Shown here: piece after piece, positions 4,749-59,624 of the stretch
Numbering within the stretch: position 1 is the first letter of the stretch
Layout: every line of letters starts with the position of its first letter
DNA from: Tubulanus polymorphus
Lineage: Eukaryota > Animalia > Nemertea
Assembly (NCBI RefSeq): GCF_964204645.1
Contig: NC_134036.1
Location: forward strand, 10,333,859 to 10,397,858
DNA: 64,000 nucleotides
Reading direction: 5' to 3'
The notes under the pieces: generated by a model
The model's input: the letters and a program-made list of their open reading frames with translations, nothing else
The model's database searches: none
Told to the model about the DNA's origin: nothing
Translations under genes and position numbers: made by a program

Positions 4749-5075
4749 CATGGTTCCCACAGTTATATGAATTCAAAATTCCCAAGTTTTCCCCAAGTAT
4801 TTCATGGGTGACTTTTCAATTTTCCCAAATGCAAATGAACACATATTGTCATGCTACAGTCAACATTTTAGTAGTGACTGGTTGATAAAGGTGATTTTCA
4901 AGGGAAACTGCTGAAGAAAGTTGCCCTTGGCAAATGCAATACGTGAAATGTAATGAATTTCCCAAATATTTCCCTGATATGAGAATTTTTCAAATTCCCA
5001 AATATTTCCAAACCGGGAATTATTATTTCAAAATTCCCAAGTTTTTCCCAATTTCCCTGTTCTGTGGGAACCATG
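4749..5075. mobile_element. MITE with 14-bp TIR CATGGTTCCCACAG and 6-bp TSD TTAATA (hAT-like)
   Basis: Perfect TIRs; TTAATA at 4743-4748 and 5076-5081; internal TTCCCAA motifs. Confidence 0.8.
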
Positions 5076-5312
5076 TTAATATTGTGCGACGGAAAATCGC
5101 ACGTCGCAGTGAAATCGCTCATCAGTCGTGGGAGCTAGCGACACGATGGAAAAATAATTTTAAGCCAATCAGCGACCACCGATACATCACGTGGTACTTC
5201 CAATAAAGGATACGCTATCTATCTTCCAGGTCATTTATGAGATTGTTATGAAGCTAAGATTCATTGACTTTATTTTCATGGAACATAATTACATGTAATT
5301 GAATATTTTCTC

Positions 5313-5465
5313 TTACAAAAATATGCCACACAGCCCATAAAGCCCACGGCTGTGCCTGCTTGATATCCAACTTCGAACCAAGTATTTAGAGCGTTCGACT
5401 GAACACAACAAAATCAAATAAGCTCCCAACAAAGCATTGAAGGAATCATCCTCGATGTCTGCCAT
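5313..5465 (-). pseudogene. Possible N-terminal fragment of a Harbinger-type transposase
   Basis: SKYLVRSWISSRHSRGLYG resembles the WVRxWIxxR..GxY N-terminal motif; CpG-rich TCGC/GCGA motif clusters flank it. Confidence 0.35.
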
Positions 5466-7184
5466 TTTGTTATCAATCGCTCTCATCGCCGCTCGCAAGT
5501 CGCATGCACGTGCACACAGTCCCTGGTTTTACCCATCATTGGATAATGAATCGCACGCGATTGCTAATCGCTGCGACCGGCGATCGATCGTCACTCATCT
5601 GCGCTCCGCTAAGGATAAGTTCTTATGAATGTATTTTGGTAACAACTTTTTATTGAAAATGGAATAGAAAAATTAATTTGAAAAACCTATCAAACTCTAA
5701 TTGATTTTATTAAAACAATTTGATATGAAGTCGCCCATTATGAGAGCGGGTTCGAATCCTATAGTAGTGATCAATCGATGGGAAACCTTCAACCCTACAC
5801 CCCCTTCTGCGAGTTAGCCTCTAATTGAAGCAACCATCGAAATTTTGAGATGCTCTACCTGCTATGCAAACAAGTCAAAATAAATTAACTACCAACATTG
5901 TCATTTAATCATGTTTAGATTAATTTCTTGCTTTTGACTTTCGATGTACATCAGACTCTTCTCAAACTAGGTCCATTTAAGAATAAGTATTCCTTCACCT
6001 ACATCGGCCATATAGTCCAACTCGGATAAGTCGTATTCTAGTTTAATTTACTCAGTTCTATGTCATTTGGATTACTCGCTAACGTAATGATCGTCCCAGC
6101 TATTGACAACTTAAGCGACTTCGACTTTACAGGACCCTCTTGTTTTGAAAAAAAATATTCAAGTTACTCTTTGGTTCAAAAACTATATATTTCATTACAT
6201 TTGTCCTCTAGTCTCTTCTGCAGTTGGAATTAACCCTTTTGTCATCTCTGGCTGTACATGCACAACAGTAACTATGGATCCCAGCTGTTTCTTAAGACTC
6301 AAAGGACCTGAATAAATATGTTACTGACTTGAAATCCATGTACAGTCGACTCAATCCAATGGAAACTTCCTTCAATGCTTCCGACATTTGTGATACAGTA
6401 TAACTCACTTTTTTCTGATGTCTAGGGACTGTCCAGATTTCTCTGAATAATGAACAATAGTTTACATAGTTTCTGATTGATAGTACCAATAATTTCATCC
6501 CGACTAAGTAAAAATCTGGATTTCAATATCAGAATTAAGTGAGTTCTACCGCATTTCAGAATTAAATTCTACAAATCCTTGATAAGGTTACTGAGGTTAT
6601 ATTAAACCTCATCAAATTTTGACAGCCAATAATCGATCAGGATGCCATCTATTGCACGGAATAGGATCAGAACAAATGGACAAATTCATAGAAATACTAT
6701 GGAAATTGTCAATTTACCTGGAGGTAAACATGGGATGAACCTATTTCAGCTGGATTCAACTACCCGCTTTTTGAACATGGGATGTTAGAAATTTTAAAAT
6801 TTTGAGTGGCATTAGTTATAAGAAAATAAGAGTTTTTGGATCTAGACCAAAACTTCTGGCAGGCAATTTGAGAAACAGCTCCTTTCCACATTTCTATTAC
6901 AAACACGCTTTATCTAGATTTTGACCTGATTTGGATACTGATTGTGGTTCACCTATAAGTAAAATATTCAATTCTAAATTTCTCAAAAGAAGACTGATTC
7001 TATGATCCAAATTAACCTGGCTTTGACTATACAATAGTCCTTAAAGGTTGAATCAGTAACTAATTCAGGCAAATCCACTAGTTTAAGAGACACCAGTATC
7101 AAGATTATATTCAACATCAGAAAACCATGTATTTTCAAAATTATAGATCCGTAAAAACAGAACTTTATTTGGAAAAAACAGTTG

Positions 7185-12890: not shown

Positions 12891-14445
12891 CCACCGCATC
12901 AATACACTCACAGGCAAATACGTTTCATGCCTTGTTATTTTTATATAGTAAAGCGTCACGCCCGCCAATACTGGTCCTTAATGGCCAATTGTTTATCGGA
13001 ACTTTATAAGTTAAAAAAAGAATACCTCATCCAGTTAAAAAAAGTTCACGCAGGTTCATTTCAGCAGCGTACTAACATGACCCACTTTTGAAAAACTGAC
13101 ATTCAATGACATGTAGTGACGCCTGCGCACTCGACTGCTTTCTGGACTTAGAGAATTTCAGAGAATTTTCCCAACACATACATCATGCGCATGCGTTAAA
13201 AATGGAGACATTGGAAACATTACGGTTTTTGCCCTCAATGCTGCCATGTTTGTCACTTCAACAGTTTTTTGAGGCGACTAGCCAAATGTTTTTAGTTACT
13301 ACTGTCATCAAAACATACTTTGGATTATAAATGTATGCCATAACAACAGTCAACATCCATCGGATTAAAGAACAGTAAGTTTGAGGGAGGTTGATTGTGT
13401 TTTAAGGGCTGAAATAGATGCTCAAAGCTTCGGTCGTCCAAGTAAAAATTCGGGACAAAAATTAACCTCTATATGACACTTTGCCTGGCCCTAGACGTTG
13501 TTTCAAGAACAATGGCTAGATACTAGACTAAGAAATACCTTGTGTTCATATTCTTTAGCCAATTTATCCGCTAAAAGAACTAAAATTACCCGGTAATTGG
13601 TCATTTCCTGAAATTTTCAAAAACAAATCAAATCGTCGGAAGGAAAGCCTCGAGCGAATACCAGTGCCCTCTACAGGGAATTCCCACGAAGTAACAATAA
13701 ACGTACGTAGTACGGTTCGAATCCCAAATACTGTATGTATAATCAGGGAAGTGTGATGAGATGGAATACGGACGCTTTTAATTGCCGGATGTAGGCTATT
13801 CAATTCAGCCCGTACATCAAAGGTTACCGCAACAGCAGTAAGCTACGCTTATCGAGTGTGTGTTACCAGCTGAACACCAGTCAACATCAACTTTGATTTG
13901 GTCGCAGAACAACCCGCAATAGTTTTAGCCCGATAAATGTTCTGCGATCGATACTACGCATGCGCACTGCAGTTCATTGAACAACGTGGAAGTGGCTGTG
14001 TATACACATATTTTTCTTTAGAAAATCGGTTGAAATTCAACAATTTCTCGTAAAATTTGTCCAAAAAGGTATGTATTTTTATTCTTCTATATCTCCGAAA
14101 CCCGGTATCGGAACATTAAGTATTTATATTGTGATTAAAGTCTGTTTTTATGTGTTAAACATATGTTTTTGCCAGTTCGTTCCAATTCCGGGTTTAGCGT
14201 TATTTGGGCCTTGAAGATGTCAAATATTTCGGCCCAGACTCGCGCAGCTTTCGTTTCTGACGTCATGTTGCTATGTTACGACACAAACATATACACGAAG
14301 TGATCTTTAAAATGTGTATTTACTACATAATAATGTTACTTAATAACGCTTACATTAGGCCTACAAGTTATTGTCCCCCATATAAACCAAGTTGCCTAAA
14401 TAGCATCAGCAATCTCATTTAATTAACCTTTTCTTGTTTTTAGTC

Positions 14446-14776
14446 ATGGATCTTTGTCGATTGTGTGGAAAAAATGCGAAACCTCCGGATCGTCGTCCTA
14501 TCGATAAAAATAATTTCAAAAGCCATGTGAAGGAGTTGTTCAACATTGATTTTGATGATGATACTGAACAGTACCCGATATATATCTAATATGTGTCGTG
14601 TCAAATTACAAAAATGGCGTAAGAACAAAAACGTTAAAAAAACTGTCCCTGTGACTATCAAATTAAAACAATGGACATGTAAACCACTGGTTAATTCCAA
14701 GTCTGGACGGCGACGTATTTGTAGTCAAAATTTTATCGATCGATTTTCCATAATGTACTGCTGCCATTCCATTTGA
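14446..14776 (+). pseudogene. RAG1-N-terminal/Chapaev-like C4 zinc-finger protein fragment, frameshifted and truncated
   Basis: MDLCRLCGK...KELFNIDFDDDTEQYPIYI[C]NMCRVKLQKW with a 2-nt deletion at ~14588; TTTTTAG acceptor at 14443, upstream donor AG|GTATGT at ~14069. Confidence 0.6.
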
Positions 14777-15277
14777 ACTGAATTTAAATACTCGATGGTT
14801 AATCACTTCAGTCATAGCCTTTTCCAAATATATAGTGTTCCTGCGAAAATAATAATAATGATTATTATTTTAACATGTACTTATCTGGATTTTTTATATT
14901 ATGTTTATATATTATTTTCTGTATTCGTTTATTATTTTATAACCTAAAAGGATTGTATTGATTATAAAAATAAATGTAAAAAATACCTGTATGTGTGTTT
15001 TCTCGTGTTCAGATCGCAGTCTCTGGTCAGCTGAGCCTGAGAAGTAGCTATATGAAAAAGAAAAGGAAAGAATAAAGTGCCTGCAATTAGGTGGAAACTA
15101 TTCCGATATTTCATTGATTCAAAAGGAATAAAACTCACTAGAATCGGCCGAATTAGTTGATCCTGATCCAGAGGATTCCCTTAATATTTCCGTATCGATC
15201 TGAACCAATTCGTCACAATCAAAGAATAGTTCGTCAAAATCGTCATCATTTATAATTTCGTTGACAACCGTTGCCAT
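14710..15277 (-). pseudogene. Second spliced gene remnant with an acidic N-terminus (exons 15277-15139, 15047-14987, 14840-~14710)
   Basis: AAAATGG start, MATVVNEIINDDDFDELFFDCDEL; GTGAGT and GTATTT donors, canonical acceptors, phases compatible. Confidence 0.55.
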
Positions 15278-16025
15278 TTTAATACAGCGGAAAGAACCGA
15301 TATCACGATTGATAAAACACTATATCCGTTTGAAGCGATGTAGAGATCGCACAATGATAACGAAAAAGTCCAAAAATGTTAGTAGTATATTCAACGTTTC
15401 GTCTATGTCCTAATAGTCATCTTCAGAAATAATGAATACTAAAGAAATTATGAGAGATATATACAGTCCAGAGACAAAGAGACTAATTCAAGTAATCACA
15501 GATGATACAAACTAAAGGAAAATTAACGTAGAAACAGTTACACGCTAAAACAGATTAAAGAGAAGCAGTTAAGAGACAAACTAGGGGGCACTTAAATTTA
15601 AGACAATTGTGAATACAAGTTGATCGACTAAAATTGATGAGGGGAAATCAGGTTTGAGTTTAACCAGTTTACAGAGGAATTTTTATATAAGTTTATTATG
15701 GGATGAAAAACCGATATTCGGAAACAACTGAATTATTACGTAGATTCCCGATCTCGCTGGTTATCGCTTATCGGCGCGTTACGTAACAAAGCGCTCGCCG
15801 ACGAACCGTTATCGGCTTTAGGGCAATTACAACGCACATTCGACAAGAGCTGCACAATAGCGTCCGAATTCCATCTCATCACACTTCCCTGGTATAATGC
15901 AGACCTGGCCAATCAAGTTGCTTGTTGATTAGGCACTACAATCGCCCGCACTCATCGCCCGTCCAACAAAAACCCTACACATGCTATCACATCAAACAAG
16001 CCCACCTGAACCGTGACGAGTAGGT

Positions 16026-16262
16026 CTACGATTGTATCCATGACTTACTTTTTTCGAGAATCGCTTCCCTGTGTTTCCCTTTAAATCCTGAGAATTTAAC
16101 CGCAAACAAACCATCGGAGTCATCTTTGGGGGTGGCGAGTGCCGAATACCATACCCCAGTTACCGGATCCCAGGCCTGTAAAATATTCTCCATTCTTTTT
16201 TTCTGCGTGCGCGTCCTCGCCCTACTGCATAACTCTAACAAGTGTGCGCGGTAAGCGGCCAA
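16026..16262 (-). other. Unidentified coding-like segment
   Basis: 78-codon open frame with protein-like composition; no recognisable domain or clear splice sites. Confidence 0.2.
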
Positions 16263-44233: not shown

Positions 44234-44325
<92 letters not shown>

Positions 44326-45132
44326 CATACATACATACATACATACATACATACATACATACATACATACATACATACATACATACATACATACATACAT
44401 ACATACATACATACATACATACATACATACATACATACATACATACATACATACATACATACATACATACATACATACATACATACATACATACATACAT
44501 ACATACATACATACATACATACATACATACATACATACATACATACATACATACATACATACATACATACATACATACATACATACATACATACATACAT
44601 ACATACATACATACATACATACATACATACATACATACATACATACATACATACATACATACATACATACATACATACATACATACATACATACATACAT
44701 ACATACATACATACATACATACATACATACATACATACATACATACATACATACATACATACATACATACATACATACATACATACATACATACATACAT
44801 ACATACATACATACATACATACATACATACATACATACATACATACATACATACATACATACATACATACATACATACATACATACATACATACATACAT
44901 ACATACATACATACATACATACATACATACATACATACATACATACATACATACATACATACATACATACATACATACATACATACATACATACATACAT
45001 ACATACATACATACATACATACATACATACATACATACATACATACATACATACATACATACATACATACATACATACATACATACATACATACATACAT
45101 ACATACATACATACATACATACATACATACAT
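44228..45132. repeat. Compound microsatellite (TA)~45(TACA)~200
   Basis: Direct reading; uninterrupted TACA run of ~810 bp. Confidence 0.98.
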
Positions 45133-51091: not shown

Positions 51092-52453
51092 TCACAAAGT
51101 AGACAAAATAATTGCAATGGCATGCCTTTTGCCATCTGCACTGGGCCTAACTGCCTCATTAATATCGAGCATATCGTGATCCGCAACAAGTCCGCGACCC
51201 TCCCTCAACAGTTCATCGATATTATCTTCAGTTGCAAGACACACATTGTGCAATACAAAACAGCTTATTACAAAGTCAATAAGTCTATCCACATTATGCA
51301 TATCGATGTACTTTAATCTTCGAAATCTCCCTTTAAGGATTCCGAAGGTATTCTCAATTGCAACACGTGAAACGCTATGTTTGTAATTGTAGTCTTTTTG
51401 ATTCCGAGTTAAATGTCCAGTGTCTTTGAATGGTACCATAGTAAAGTCATTCAGTTCATAAGCAGAATCTCCAAGGAGATGTGAGCTCTCAGGGAATAGA
51501 ATTCTCCTTTTAACCATGTCCTCAGCAGCAAGCCAAATTTCAGTATTTTTAAAGACTCTGGAGTCATGGCTAGATCCAGGCCATCCAACATTTACATGAG
51601 TGAACCGATATTCATCATCACACACAGCGCACACATTTAATGAATGGAACTTTTTCCGGTTAATATAGGATTCAGGGCTTTTGACAGGTGCTTTAATTGG
51701 TATGTGCGTTCCATCTACTGCACCCACTACTTTTGGAAATCCTGCTTTCTTTTCAAATCCAGCCATCACCTGAGTCAGACGTTCACCTTGTGGCCACTTG
51801 ATTACTCGATCCATTACGTGCTTCACGATTACCGACGAAATAAACCCTGAAATAACAGTATCATAATTAAAAGCAATACATATTCACAGTCATGAGACCC
51901 CGAGTATTGTATCATTTTAGTGACTGGCATAGTTATAATATTCTTTTATAAATTTAATGCACATTAATTAAAACAACTCACCAATAATATTGAACACTGT
52001 TGCTTCACATACTCCATACAGATCAGCAATTCTGATTAAAGGATCTGATGTGGCTGCATAATGTATGTAAATTAATAACTGCTTTTCCTTCTGTATGGTA
52101 AGTTTATAATCTCGAATCTCATTTTCTGCATCGATATAAGGAATCATGAACTGAAGAAGCACTTTAAAAGTTTGTTTCGACATCCTAAATCTCGCTCGAA
52201 ATTCGTCATCACAATATTTAGCAACAGTGTAGCAACAGTAATTTTCAACTCTCAGCTTGCATTTTAATTTCAAATGTTTTATCGTTTCACTATAAGTAAG
52301 AACGGTATTTGCAGATGCGGTATAGTTCAAAAGTTCCTCCACTTGCTTCTCCAGATAAACCTGCGGTAGCGAAGCCAACTGGCTGTCTTGCATTAATATT
52401 AATGCAATTGTTAATATCCTTTTTCTTCGGTTCGAATTTCGCACCAGCGCCAT
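51092..52453 (-). CDS. PIF/Harbinger (HARBI1-like DDE) transposase, 2 exons (52453-51982, 51846-51092), 408 aa, apparently intact
   Basis: FRMSKQTF, GAVDGTHIPI, YINRKKFHSLN, GWPGSSHDSRVF, LLGDSAY, RVAIENTFGILKGRFRRL, CFVLHN; GTGAGT..TTTCAG intron joins in frame. Confidence 0.93.
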
Positions 52454-54338: not shown

Positions 54339-57300
54339 ATGTCATCTTCAGACGAGAAACTCCGTTTGAAGGCAAACAGAACGGGAATCAGACGAGCAGT
54401 AACAAGGTACGTCAACGAACGTGATCGTTTAGTGTCTGCCCATTCCGACGATACCAGTTTGTTGGAAGACATTACAACGAAATTAGAATCGAAATTCCAT
54501 ACGTTGTCTTGTAACCACGAAGAATTTGTAAATGTTGTGGATCCCAGCGAGTTAGAATCGTGCTGGGCGGAACACGAAACCTAAGAAAAATCCGCAGATG
54601 AAGCGTTGTGGAAAGCGCGGGCGTTAATACGTAAAATTAAACAGGGAAATATACCCGACCATTGCGTCCCAACCAGTAGTTTCAGTTCGTCAGTAAAGTT
54701 GCCGAAACTTACGTTACCGAAATTCAATGGCGATCCGTTACAATGGAGAAATTTCTGGGATTCGTTTGAATCGTGCGTTCATAATAATGTCCAATTGCCA
54801 GAACTTAATAAATTTGCGTATCTGAAATCGTGTTTATCAGGAACCGCGTTGTCGTGTGTTTCTGGGTTATCAGGAGATAGTTACAACCACGCCGTAGAAT
54901 TGCTCATCGATCGATTTGGAAAGCCGCAAAAGCTCGTAAAAGTTTACATGAAAGCGCTTCCTAACATCAGAAAACCGTCATCATCCGTATCGGAATTGCG
55001 TTCGTTTTACGATAATATTAACATCTACATTCGTTCGCTCGAAAGCCTAGGAAAACAACCAGATTCGTATGATGATTTGTTAGTGCCGGTTCTTCTCGAA
55101 AAGTTACCGTCATCTACCGTTCAAAATATATCGCGTGGTCGACAATGCGTCGATTGGACATTGGTGGATCTTCTATTATGTCTAAACAATGAAATTGACA
55201 TCTTAGAATTATGTTACTCAGATAGCAGAAATATTTCATTTGAAGAACGAAACGAGGTTAATTCTTTTGTAGCTACTGGCACAATTACTGGTAAATCTAG
55301 GCTTTATCCATTTTCCAATAGGAAATGTGCGTACTGCAAAGGTGATCACTCCTCAAATAATTGTATGAAATGTAGTTCAATTCTGGCTAGAAAACGTATA
55401 ATCAAAGATCGAGTTTGTGTTTTAATTGTTTGCGAAATGATCACGTTATCAAAGATTGCAAATCTGAAACCAGGTGTGAACAAAAAACACCACACTAGTA
55501 TATGTGAAGGGTTTGAAGCAAAAAGATCGAATTTTGAAAATCGGCTAGATTCCGGTATAAACACTTCATTTCAGAATTCTAATAATAGTTCAGTCTCATT
55601 TATCGAGTGCGAACACGACACAAATAGAGTTAAACGAACTGATTCAAAAAGCATTTCTAGTAGGGTAGTAAACACAGTTAATGCTTCGATTCTATTAAAG
55701 ACCGCAATTGTACGCATTTCTGGTTGTATTTACTCACATGATTCAGGTGTCCTTTTTGACGACGGTTCACAGCGTTCGTTCATAAATCGTCACTTAGTAG
55801 ATACGCTTGGGCTGAAGTCCATTCGCACTGAAAATGTTAACGTCAGTGGGTTTGGAGGGAAAGAGTTAGAACCACAATTCCGAGTTTTAGATGTAGTAAG
55901 GGTGAAGGTCGTTTGTTCTGACAATTCAACAATAGAAATAGAAGCTTTAGTCGTACGTCAAGTTGCGAGACCAATATTTCTCGGCGATAGAACTACCTTA
56001 TTACATTATCCTATAATAAAGAAACTCACTCTTGCTCATCCTATCAATGCTGAAAAACTTTTCAATGTTGGAATGTTGATAGGTTCTGATTTCTACTATA
56101 GATTTATAGAAAAGGGTTTTAATTTACCTGTTGTGGTGATGAGGTCCAACCTGTCGTTATTCCTAGTCGGGTTGGACATTTAATATCAGGTCCGATGCCA
56201 TCTACTCCATCTGTATTTCCTTTATCAGCTTCTTTTTTGACAGTTGATGAGTCTACATCCAAGGTCGAAGTGCAGTTAGAAGAATTTCATGATTTCTGGT
56301 CTTTAGAATCTTTAGAATCAAACACTCGCTTCTGACGATGAGGTATTAACAGCTGAACGTTATTGTAAAGATTCATTGACTTACAACCACGAAAATAAAA
56401 AGTACATCGCTAGACTTCCTTGGAATTTGAACCACACAGAATTACCGACAAATTATAGCATTTGTTTACATCGAACTCGTTCTACAATTGATAGATTAGT
56501 TAAATCAGGTCATCTCGCGCAGTATGCATCTATCATCGAAGAACAGTGTCAACGTGCTTTTATCGAGGTAGTCTCCAATGCTCAGGCCGAAGGTGCATGT
56601 CATTATATTCCCCATCATGCAGTCTATCGTAACTCGGCATCTACACCAGTTCGCATAGTTTATGATTGCTCTTGTAGAGGTTCAAAACATTCAGTTTCTC
56701 TAAATGATTGTCTTGAAGCTGGACCAAGGTTACAAAATGACATTTTTGGTATTTTGCTTCGTTTCCGACAACATTCCATCGCAAATGTATCGGACGTTGA
56801 GAAGGCATTTCTCATGGTTGATCTCCATCCAGATGACAGGGATTTTTGCAGGTTTTTATGGTCAGAAGACCCAGCTAATCCAAATAGTAGACTCATTACC
56901 TGGAGATTTCGTGTCGTTCTGTTTGGAGCAATTTGTAGCCCTTTTATCCTCAATGCAACAATATTGAAGCACATCAAATTAAATCCATGTGAAGTTTCAG
57001 ATCAAGCAGAACATCTACGTCGACAATGTCTACTGCAGCTTAGAATCTGAAGCCAAGGCAGTAGATTTCTTTTCTACTTCTAGGAGCTTACTTCAGCTTG
57101 GTGGGTTCAATCTACGAGCATGGTCTTCAAATTCTTCTGAAGTTGTTAAGATCGCTCAAGAAAACGGCATTCATGATCCAGGCAACACATCCGTTGTTGG
57201 TATGATGTGGGACGCCACAACTGATGAGATGTTCTTTCAGAGGAATCATTTTAATACTGATGCATCTGTTGTCACAAAACGTCAGGTTTTAAGTGACACT

Positions 57301-59624
57301 TCGAAGATTTTCGATCCTTTAGGTTTAGTATCACCGGTTTCACTTAGAGGAAAGTTGCTAGTTCAAAAATTGTGGCAGTTACAGTGTGACTGGGACAATC
57401 CGATCGGTGAAGAACTTCAAGCTGAATGGTTCAGCATCATATTTGATTTCAGTAAATTCAGTGAATTGAAGTTCCCGCGTCAGTGTTTCTCTCTCTGGAG
57501 AAGATGAGTATTTTGTCTTTTGTGATGCTCGTAAGGTCGCATACGGGGCTGTTATTTATATACGCTGTGGTCCATCTGTTTCATTGTTAACCGCCAAGAG
57601 CAGAGTAGCACCGATCAAACAATTATCTATCCCTCGACTAGAATTGATGGCTGTTTGCATTGGTATGCGTTTACTTTCAAACGTAGTTTCCAGTCTTAAA
57701 GCTACAAGCAACCATATTTTCAGACAGCGAAATTGTTCTTGCTTGGATCACTGGTGATAAGATTTTGAGACAGTTTAAGACTAATCGTTTGAAGGAGATC
57801 GCTTCTGAGATTGATAAGGGTAACCTCACAATTTCTTGGCAACATTGTTCATCATCAGATAATCCTGCAGATTTAGTAAGTAGAGGTTGTTGCGGTGGCA
57901 GGTGGCAGGGTCCATCCTTCCTGGTTGACTTCAATAGCCAATTGACATCAGTTTCCTTGGTACGGGTGATAGACAGCGATTTATCTTCGTTTGCCACTCT
58001 GATTAATTTTTCACATCGCATTGACGCAATCATGAACGTTGAAGAATTTTCAAGTCTACGGCGTTTACTTGTCACATCCGTTTTTGTGTTCAGATTTCTG
58101 ACCATTTGTAGGGGGCAATCACCTGTGGAAACAGGTCCTCCAACGTTCATTGAACTGACAACAGTTTTCACTTGTTGGGTTAAATGCAGTTAGAGACAAA
58201 CTTATGACTCTGAGATCAGATTGCTTATTACACACAAAACGAACGATCGTATCAAAAAACTCAGCTTATATCTTGATAAAGACTCTGTATTGAGATCGCA
58301 GGGTCGCATTCATAATGCACAATTACAGGATCGCACTAAATTCCCTATTTTACTCTCTCGACATCATCACTTATCAACACTAATCGTTCTGCAGACTCAC
58401 GAAGATATCCTGCACTCATGGATAACAATACTGTCGCTAAAGTAAGGCAATATATCTGGATTCCATGTTTGACTCAACTCACAAAAAAAGGTTCTTAATC
58501 GCTGCATCCCTTGCAAAAAGCTTCCATATGCATATCCAAATCCACCTCCTCTTCCGACAAATAGAGTTCAAAGCGCCGCTCCATTTGCAATTACTGGGGT
58601 AGACTATACCGGCAAAATAACAGGTCGAAGCGGAGAAGATTCTTACATCTGTTTGTTTAACTGTGCTGTAACAAGATGCATCCAATCTAGAACTGACACC
58701 TAACATGACGACTCACTCATTTGTTAGCTTTTCGTCGTTTTTGTAGTCGTCGTAGTGTACCCTCTCTCATGATGTCTGATAATCAATCAATGTTCGAATG
58801 TTCGGCTGAGATAATCAAATCTCTCATCGAAAACCACGCCATCAAAACACATCTTGCTAAAAATAGTTGTTCTTGGTTTTTCATACCGAAAAGAGCACCG
58901 TGGTTTGGTGGATTTTGGGAAAGGGAAATCGGCATGACAAAAACCTTACTTAAGAAAGTCATGCGGAAAAATTAACTGGACCGAGATGAATTACAAACGC
59001 TTTTGTTTGTTTTGTTTGATAGAATCTATGCTAAATGACCGACTCTTGACACACGTTTCGACTGATCTAAGAGATCCAGATGCCATCACGCCATCTCAAT
59101 TGTTTCAAGGTCGAAAAATCGTCACTGTTCCCTATCCTATCGTTGATCTCGATGAATTAGCAGACCCTGATTTCATTGATGCTACTGTCATACGACAAAG
59201 AGCAAAACATCGTGCCTTTTTACTACATCATTTCAATAACCGCTGGCGAAATGAATATTTGACCGCTTTACGAGAGAAACACACTCGCTCTGGTACCACG
59301 GTTAAAAGTATCAAGAAGGGTTATGTTGTAATTGTGCACAACGAAGGTCCTCGGTTAAGTTGGAGACTTGCAGTTGTCACACGCCTTAATACTGGTTGCG
59401 ACGGTCTTATTAGGCATGTTGATATCCGCACGTCAACAGGTGTGACCAATCGGCCAATAACTAAATTATATCCCCTCGAGTTTTCTAGATCTGACTCAGT
59501 TAACGAGATAAATACGGTCGATTCCGATGGAGGCACTTGTGTAGGTGCAATATGCATGCTCGCCCGGGAACGTCTTGCCGCAAAACGGGCAAGAGAATTG
59601 ATTAAAAATTCGTTCGATAATTAG
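54339..59624 (+). pseudogene. BEL/Pao gag-pol polyprotein with stops and frameshifts
   Basis: KLPKLTLPKFNGDPLQWRNFWDSF (gag), LFDDGSQRSF (protease), YIPHHAV / SDVEKAF / YVDN (RT), FCDA and DNPADLVSRG (RNase H), MSDN / APWFGGFWER (integrase), RWRNEYL..RPITKLYPLE (C-terminal domain); in-frame TAA at 54582. Confidence 0.93.

Follow-up and report, generated by a model that had tools for sequence, protein, structure and literature searches.

An internally deleted P-type element of the ribbon worm Tubulanus polymorphus and its probable two-gene parent with a RAG1-related zinc finger

The THAP and BED domains are descended from transposases, and RAG-like elements are characterized by 5-bp target-site duplications and CAC ends. 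N-RAG-TP, which Panchin and Moroz reportedly described in 2008, is said to be related to Chapaev and not to be P-type. The N-terminal zinc domain (NZD) of RAG1 is also known from Chapaev elements, as the Chapa domain, and Kapitonov and Koonin (PMC4411706) stated that no other known transposable element encodes it. For Hong et al. (2026), Chapaev is the sole other lineage in which a RAG1-like domain is consistently retained, and P elements and THAP go unmentioned in their paper (bioRxiv 10.64898/2026.01.24.700457). Galileo, which also makes 7-bp duplications, is a member of the P superfamily (PMC4168063). No literature linking P transposases with fingers of the RAG1 or ZAD type was found. Here, we describe a transposon at positions 13744-15891 of a 64,000-nucleotide stretch of the Tubulanus polymorphus genome (contig NC_134036.1, positions 10,333,859 to 10,397,858; the whole stretch is hereafter called the window). 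With a probability of about 0.88, it is a non-autonomous copy, shortened by an internal deletion, of a young P-superfamily transposon of 5.9 kb, in which the transposase carries a RAG1-related one-zinc finger instead of THAP and the tail domain is encoded by a convergent second gene (gene 2).

The element ends in inverted repeats of the form CAGGG...CCCTG that span 36 nt with 94% complementarity (perfect over 24 nt, and 33 nt with one mismatch), and is flanked by GTATAAT on both sides (Table 1). The element is inserted into another repeat, and two paralogues of this host repeat (L054 and L053) have flanks of 99% identity and contain a single uninterrupted GTATAAT. These empty sites show that the borders of the element are exact and that the 7-bp duplication was made at insertion. 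The preliminary description of the window, made from its sequence, had reported 33-bp inverted repeats with CA..TG termini, an exact 7-bp duplication GTATAAT and two genes. This observation was confirmed, with the arms of the repeats extending slightly further than reported. The host repeat occupies 13344-13743 and 15892-16200 of the window and has three further copies with 98-99% identity across 370-400 bp, two of which provide the empty sites described above; its first 187 bp are found at more than 35 places with ~82% identity, and no tRNA was detected in it by ARAGORN.

The genome (268 Mb) was searched with the 24-nt element end, which is identical across all copies, and 119 matches representing ~60 copies were obtained. 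Three end pairs are 5.5-5.9 kb apart (L031, L032 and L033), so the longer copies that the preliminary description expected from its inverted repeats were recovered; L031 and L032 are each 5910 bp long and 99.6% identical. The transposase gene of this parent has five predicted exons and would encode a protein of ~855 amino acids (aa). From its N-terminus onwards, this protein comprises a zinc finger, another cysteine-rich region, a coiled coil and a helix-turn-helix, and lastly an RNase H domain that is interrupted by a GTP-binding insertion domain. In the Pfam search, the TNP-like RNase H N-terminal domain (PF21787) was detected at 93.1 bits and the RNase H C-terminal motif (PF21789) at 22 bits, together with a weak match to the P-element helix-turn-helix. 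Positions 23-65 of the GTP-binding insertion profile PF21788 are hit by exon 2 (12.8 bits) and positions 66-113 by exon 3 (22.2 bits); neither score reaches the cut-off by itself, and full-length relatives score 49-61 bits with this profile. Because the two exons hit consecutive parts of the profile, these matches support the splice model. A family profile, for which exon 1 was combined with 17 relatives, hits the P transposase of Drosophila (6p5a) with an E-value of 2.6e-17, with the catalytic motifs FDEMK and SDGA aligned, and the QDPLEEHF motif is located in exon 5.

The transposase has a basic tail and ends ~65 residues past the glutamate of QDPLEEHF; thus, the usual C-terminal domain of P transposases is absent from the polypeptide. 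No THAP domain was detected by Pfam in this transposase or its clade, although THAP was found in the more distant relatives P0039-P0043. Relatives with 30-38% identity over the full exon are present in the crinoids Anneissia and Antedon, the sea stars Patiria and Acanthaster, the sea cucumber Holothuria and metagenomes, and a shorter match was obtained from a mussel. Between the finger and the coiled coil (L031 1180-1680, residues ~100-260), invariant cysteines in the pattern C.GN.DF ... RH..C ... C..C are found throughout the clade. Pfam recognizes nothing in this region, which could form another zinc module or the part that binds DNA. In the right subterminal region of the full-length copies (L031 5558-5851), there is a 143-bp tandem duplication that is single in the short copies. 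Other assignments of the element were rejected: a hAT element, which would have an 8-bp duplication, because the extra base is mismatched in the window (T vs. G), and a RAG-like, Transib or Chapaev element on the grounds of the P-type core, the 7-bp duplication and the CAGGG ends.

The window copy corresponds to L031 201-1126 joined to 4798-6110 and retains the beginnings of both genes (Table 1). The plus-strand frame that starts with MDLCRLCG ends after 47 codons because a 2-bp deletion shifts the frame; this deletion is common to a subgroup of five copies (L001-L004 and L007). The preliminary description had recognized the frameshift in this gene, but had attributed it to a single missing base. 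Its three-exon gene on the minus strand with an acidic N-terminus was borne out, its exons having GT/AG borders, and the internal deletion at which it supposed the two genes to meet is real, although the junction lies at 14678/14679 rather than near 14710.

Table 1. Coordinates of the element, its flanks and its gene remnants (positions in the window unless marked L031)
Feature	Position	Strand	Basis or remark
Whole non-autonomous element	13744..15891	+	2148 bp; probably derived by internal deletion from a two-gene P-superfamily transposon of 5910 bp
Left terminal inverted repeat, begins CAGGGAAG	13744..13779	+	Inverted-repeat search
Right terminal inverted repeat	15856..15891	-	Inverted-repeat search
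Left 7-bp target-site duplication GTATAAT	13737..13743	.	Read in window
Right 7-bp target-site duplication GTATAAT	15892..15898	.	Read in window
Transposase exon 1 remnant	14446..14678	+	78 codons: CxxC...CxxC zinc finger and basic helix
2-bp deletion within the third zinc-ligand cysteine codon	14587..14588	+	Comparison with full-length L031
Internal deletion junction	14678..14679	.	Joins L031 1126 to 4798; 3.67 kb absent
Gene 2 exon 1, acidic N-terminus, begins MATVVNEIINDDDFDE	15139..15277	-	GT/AG borders
Gene 2 exon 2, 61 nt	14987..15047	-	AG acceptor, GT donor, phases fit
Gene 2 exon 3, cut by the deletion to its first 54 codons	14679..14840	-	Intact 331-aa exon: L031 3952-4947
Transposase exons 1-5 of full-length L031	L031 892-2682; 2770-2931; 3018-3206; 3293-3425; 3515-3819		GT/AG borders, phases match

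Gene 2 of the parent is predicted to consist of three exons and is convergent with the transposase gene. Its 331-aa exon 3 has no Pfam match, and searches of the genome with PF22824 and PF12596 yielded no support for gene 2. The gene 2 family comprises stand-alone proteins of 170-535 aa, with 4338 representatives at E-values up to 1e-3; among its members (P0058 and others, alignment A5), an N-terminal PHD finger is present in 4 of 113 and C2H2 fingers in 3 of 113. A structural model based on 113 sequences reached a predicted local distance difference test score (pLDDT) of 90.7. Among PDB matches to this model, Foldseek ranked one chain of the P element transposase complex, chain B, first with a probability of 0.98 (E-value 0.26), and all others have a probability of 0.12 or less. 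When aligned with VIA-align, residues 136-305 of the model match residues 617-734 of 6p5a_B at Z 12.3, with a root-mean-square deviation (rmsd) of 2.3 Å and 118 of 118 residues aligned, followed by the next structure at Z 5.3. On the strength of this match, the C-terminal half of the gene 2 protein is predicted to be folded like the C-terminal domain of the P transposase.

Gene 2 is also located tail to tail with the transposase gene in Anneissia (L040), Patiria (L041), Holothuria (L042) and a second Tubulanus family (L036, L038 and L039). The Anneissia element has perfect 35-37-nt ends beginning with CAGGGAG and an exact 7-bp duplication, GTCCAAC. In Holothuria leucospilota, at least eight 35-bp palindromic units beginning with CAGGGAGTTGC are located within 21 kb around the transposase gene (L042 6128-19253). 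They share the terminal CAGGGAG with the Tubulanus and Anneissia elements, which suggests that they are foldback-like miniature derivatives. Just past a truncated family B transposase, two open frames of 1068 and 332 aa are present on the minus strand (L037 5518-9836), and these probably represent another mobile element that has been inserted there.

It is improbable, in our view, that gene 2 merely travels with the element as cargo, or acts as a regulator in its own right, and is not a detached transposase subunit. A role of this kind would fit its residues 1-132, which have no assigned fold, the PHD or C2H2 fingers of some relatives, which suggest the reading of chromatin or DNA, and the large size of a family that is always stand-alone; however, its C-terminal half matches the whole C-terminal domain that the early-ending transposases of the clade lack, and the gene pair has been kept in the same arrangement from ribbon worm to echinoderms. 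We favour the reading that the gene 2 protein would supply the detached tail domain to the transposase assembly.

Among the 32 copies that have both ends, 30 show an exact 7-bp duplication, so the duplication length given in the preliminary description holds for the family. The 30 restored targets reveal a palindromic preference, TTnnTnnnAnnAA, centred on the duplication, with T at -3 in 27 and A at +9 in 26 of them. Mean divergence among 27 short copies is 1.3%. The element in the window is thus a young, internally deleted cut-and-paste copy of the P kind. Its insertion involves a 7-bp staggered cut within such a palindromic target, and the short copies, including that in the window, were probably mobilized in trans by the transposase of full-length copies. 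The family also includes a 181-bp miniature composed of 148 bp of the left end and the right inverted repeat, with the 7-bp duplication GTAATTC (L035, G000 C5:14489728-14489908); a second 181-bp copy is located at C5:14525260-14525440.

As internally deleted Drosophila P elements such as KP are known to encode N-terminal repressors, the short copies might have been kept because they encode a similar product, a 110-aa protein made of the finger and 32 residues antisense to gene 2. This open frame is indeed kept in 15 of the 26 short copies, but at the observed divergence, chance alone would leave a 330-nt frame open in that many copies. Moreover, the five-copy subgroup to which the window element belongs spread after its frameshift, and the antisense tail of the frame bears no sign of constraint. 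A KP-like repressor is thus very unlikely, and this reading was rejected for want of evidence of constraint on the frame.

The finger of the window family, taken by itself, resembles a ZAD. Its first 84 residues, in the L031 version, score 32.8 bits against zf-AD (PF07776) when isolated (cut-off, 28) and 26.9 bits within the whole exon. An AlphaFold2 model of the finger has a pLDDT of 85-94 over residues 1-80. When the Foldseek matches to this model were re-aligned, the top five were all ZAD structures with Z 5.4-6.9 (best rmsd 2.3 Å over 65 residues), followed by Z 4.0, and an independent wide structure search with the same model recovered six ZAD structures at Z 4.5-6.7, followed by Z 3.5. 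The finger of the window family is therefore predicted, on the basis of its model, to be ZAD-like with one four-cysteine zinc site.

The clade to which this transposase belongs adds to this picture. In mouse RAG1, the ligands are C110, C113, C175 and C178 for ZFa and H102, H206, C210 and C213 for ZFb (bioRxiv 10.64898/2026.01.24.700457). The cysteines of the first site, C4, C7, C48 and C51, are invariant across the clade and correspond to the four ZFa ligands. The family profile described above matches the mouse RAG1 N-terminal zinc domain (21wb) with an E-value of 2.2e-6 (30.1 bits, profile positions 3-99) and the ZAD 7po9 with an E-value of 1.7e-3 (20.5 bits). Pfam RAG1_imp_bd (PF12560) is passed by two members, P0012 with 39.9 bits and P0011 with 31.9 bits (profile positions ~134-236). 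P0013 has scores for RAG1_imp_bd as well as zf-AD, and P0012 alone matches 21wb with an E-value of 5e-4. A word search with the P0012 N-terminus returned only P0012 itself, and a PF12560 search of the Tubulanus genome gave no match, but its controls gave none either.

The second zinc site takes three forms in the clade. Many members have a histidine eight residues ahead of the first cysteine, as H102 in RAG1, together with H-x3/4-C-x2-C past the helix. A second pattern combines an N-terminal HxxC with a CxxC that lacks the histidine, which amounts to a compensating ligand swap, and a third, which includes both Tubulanus families, has neither. The site is present in P0009, P0011-P0013, P0015 and P0021 and absent in the window family, in which the protein begins directly with MDLCRLCG and has no H..CxxC past the helix. 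In a tree inferred from the transposase with the finger columns taken out, the finger-bearing clade is monophyletic (100/99), and within it at least five changes in the state of the second site are counted. One-zinc forms branch either as sisters of two-zinc forms or from among them; Tubulanus A and B, for example, form the sister group of P0013 (90/86). This distribution suggests that the second zinc site was secondarily lost in the window family, and loss would be the simpler reading of the repeated changes in the clade as a whole. The 25 residues after the second CxxC have a net charge of +3 to +10 in the clade and +10 in the window family; a basic patch at this helix has been described for RAG1 and not for ZAD (bioRxiv 10.64898/2026.01.24.700457). 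Judged from these sequence comparisons, the N-terminus of the P clade and the N-terminal zinc domain of RAG1 appear to be homologous. In place of THAP, the basic finger and possibly the adjoining cysteine-rich region would recognize the element ends or recruit a partner.

It is very unlikely that the finger is instead a common treble clef of the ZAD type taken over from a host gene, with no specific kinship to RAG1/Chapa and a likeness due to CxxC...CxxC convergence. This reading would account for a finger that on its own scores only as zf-AD and matches only ZAD structures, and the first zinc sites of ZAD and RAG1 are themselves alike (bioRxiv 10.64898/2026.01.24.700457), but all 45 zf-AD matches in the genome fall in these P elements or the sister family with no host ZAD gene seen, the clade profile ranks RAG1 over ZAD, other members have a second site at the RAG1 positions with compensating swaps (HxxC+CxxC vs. 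H+H..CxxC), first-site-only forms are nested among two-site forms, and the helix is strongly basic in the manner of RAG1.

The proposal of the preliminary description, a deletion derivative of a two-gene transposon that joins a RAG1-N-like module to P-type ends, is thus supported by a full-length 5.9-kb parent, a P-type core without THAP, 7-bp duplications and a clade finger that matches RAG1. As to whether ZAD would fit the peptide better than RAG1-N/Chapa, the answer is divided: the window family's own peptide is ZAD-like, and the clade profile favours RAG1 (30 vs. 20 bits). Several findings weigh against our reading. The finger of the window family gives no significant match to RAG1 on its own. 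None of the three full-length copies read is intact, and a working source copy is thus not among them: in L031, exon 4 contains a TGA and exon 1 of gene 2 has lost 4 bp; L032 has lost 1 bp from exon 1; and L033 has lost 5 bp from exon 3 and 395 bp from gene 2. The five- and three-exon gene structures are models that rest on sequence and profile continuity. For gene 2, the only recurrent Pfam match in the family is Tnp_P_element_C, which is below threshold in 13 of 113 members (best E-value, 0.0019), and searches of PDB sequences with the gene 2 profiles A4 and A5 gave no match to a P transposase.

Where the non-core N-terminus of RAG1 came from is a standing question about how adaptive immunity evolved, and this element bears on it. 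Hong et al. (2026) postulated a hypothetical one-zinc intermediate and proposed a ZAD-to-NZD direction (bioRxiv 10.64898/2026.01.24.700457). It is possible, although on balance we doubt it, that the RAG1 N-terminal zinc domain is not confined to RAG1 and Chapaev elements but is a module that moved among the unrelated Transib/RAG, Chapaev and P superfamilies, that its two-zinc form decayed at least five times in the P clade to a ZAD-like finger, and that the insect ZAD descends from such a transposase finger; if true, this descent would be the reverse of the proposed direction. A recently active P-type clade with eight-ligand and repeated one-zinc forms provides real sequences on which the RAG1 trajectory can be tested, as well as material for asking whether the domain binds DNA or a partner. 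Likewise, the split of the tail into a second gene offers a layout that may be used to probe the role of the P transposase C-terminal domain.

Other mobile elements and repeats are present elsewhere in the window. At 54606-59624, open frames contain DUF1759 (122 bits) as well as DUF5641 (65 bits), domains typical of BEL/Pao-type long terminal repeat retrotransposons. A fragment of a PIF/Harbinger-type DDE_Tnp_4 transposase (126 bits) is found on the minus strand at 51095-51826. An (ATAC)n microsatellite of ~222 units at 44243-45132 explains why the GC skew is strong there and why both strands have long open frames.

Compared with known systems, the family is closest in its core to the Drosophila P element and THAP9, with which it shares an RNase H core with a GTP-binding insertion, a helix-turn-helix and coiled coil before the core, terminal inverted repeats of ~31-36 bp and a palindromic target centred on the duplication. 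It differs from them in having a RAG1/ZAD-type finger and a cysteine-rich region in place of THAP and a C-terminal domain in a separate convergent gene, and from the Drosophila P element also in the length of the duplication (7 bp vs. 8 bp). Galileo and 1360 resemble it in their 7-bp duplication and P-type transposase; however, Galileo has THAP and very long foldback-like ends (PMC3688188), whereas this family has 36-bp ends, no THAP and two genes. KP and other internally deleted P elements similarly keep both ends and an N-terminal coding part, and deleted copies outnumber full-length ones, but no evidence of a functional truncated product exists for this family.

With regard to the finger, the clade N-terminus aligns over the full length of the RAG1 NZD or Chapa domain, with a basic helix and, in some members, all eight zinc ligands, but it is joined to a P-type core and not to that of Transib/RAG or Chapaev, and the second site is absent in the window family. 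The ZAD of insect ZAD-zinc-finger proteins (zf-AD, PF07776) has the same predicted fold (Z 5.2-6.9 for five ZAD structures) with one four-cysteine zinc site, and the finger scores over its gathering cut-off. In contrast to the insect ZAD, this finger sits on a ribbon-worm transposase without C2H2 arrays after it, has a strongly basic helix and has sisters with a second zinc site. Finally, RAG-like transposons (ProtoRAG) likewise have inverted ends that enclose a convergent gene pair, and their catalytic subunit bears an NZD-type finger, but this subunit belongs to another superfamily, and gene 2 of the present family is predicted to encode an all-helical protein resembling the P tail and not a kelch propeller.

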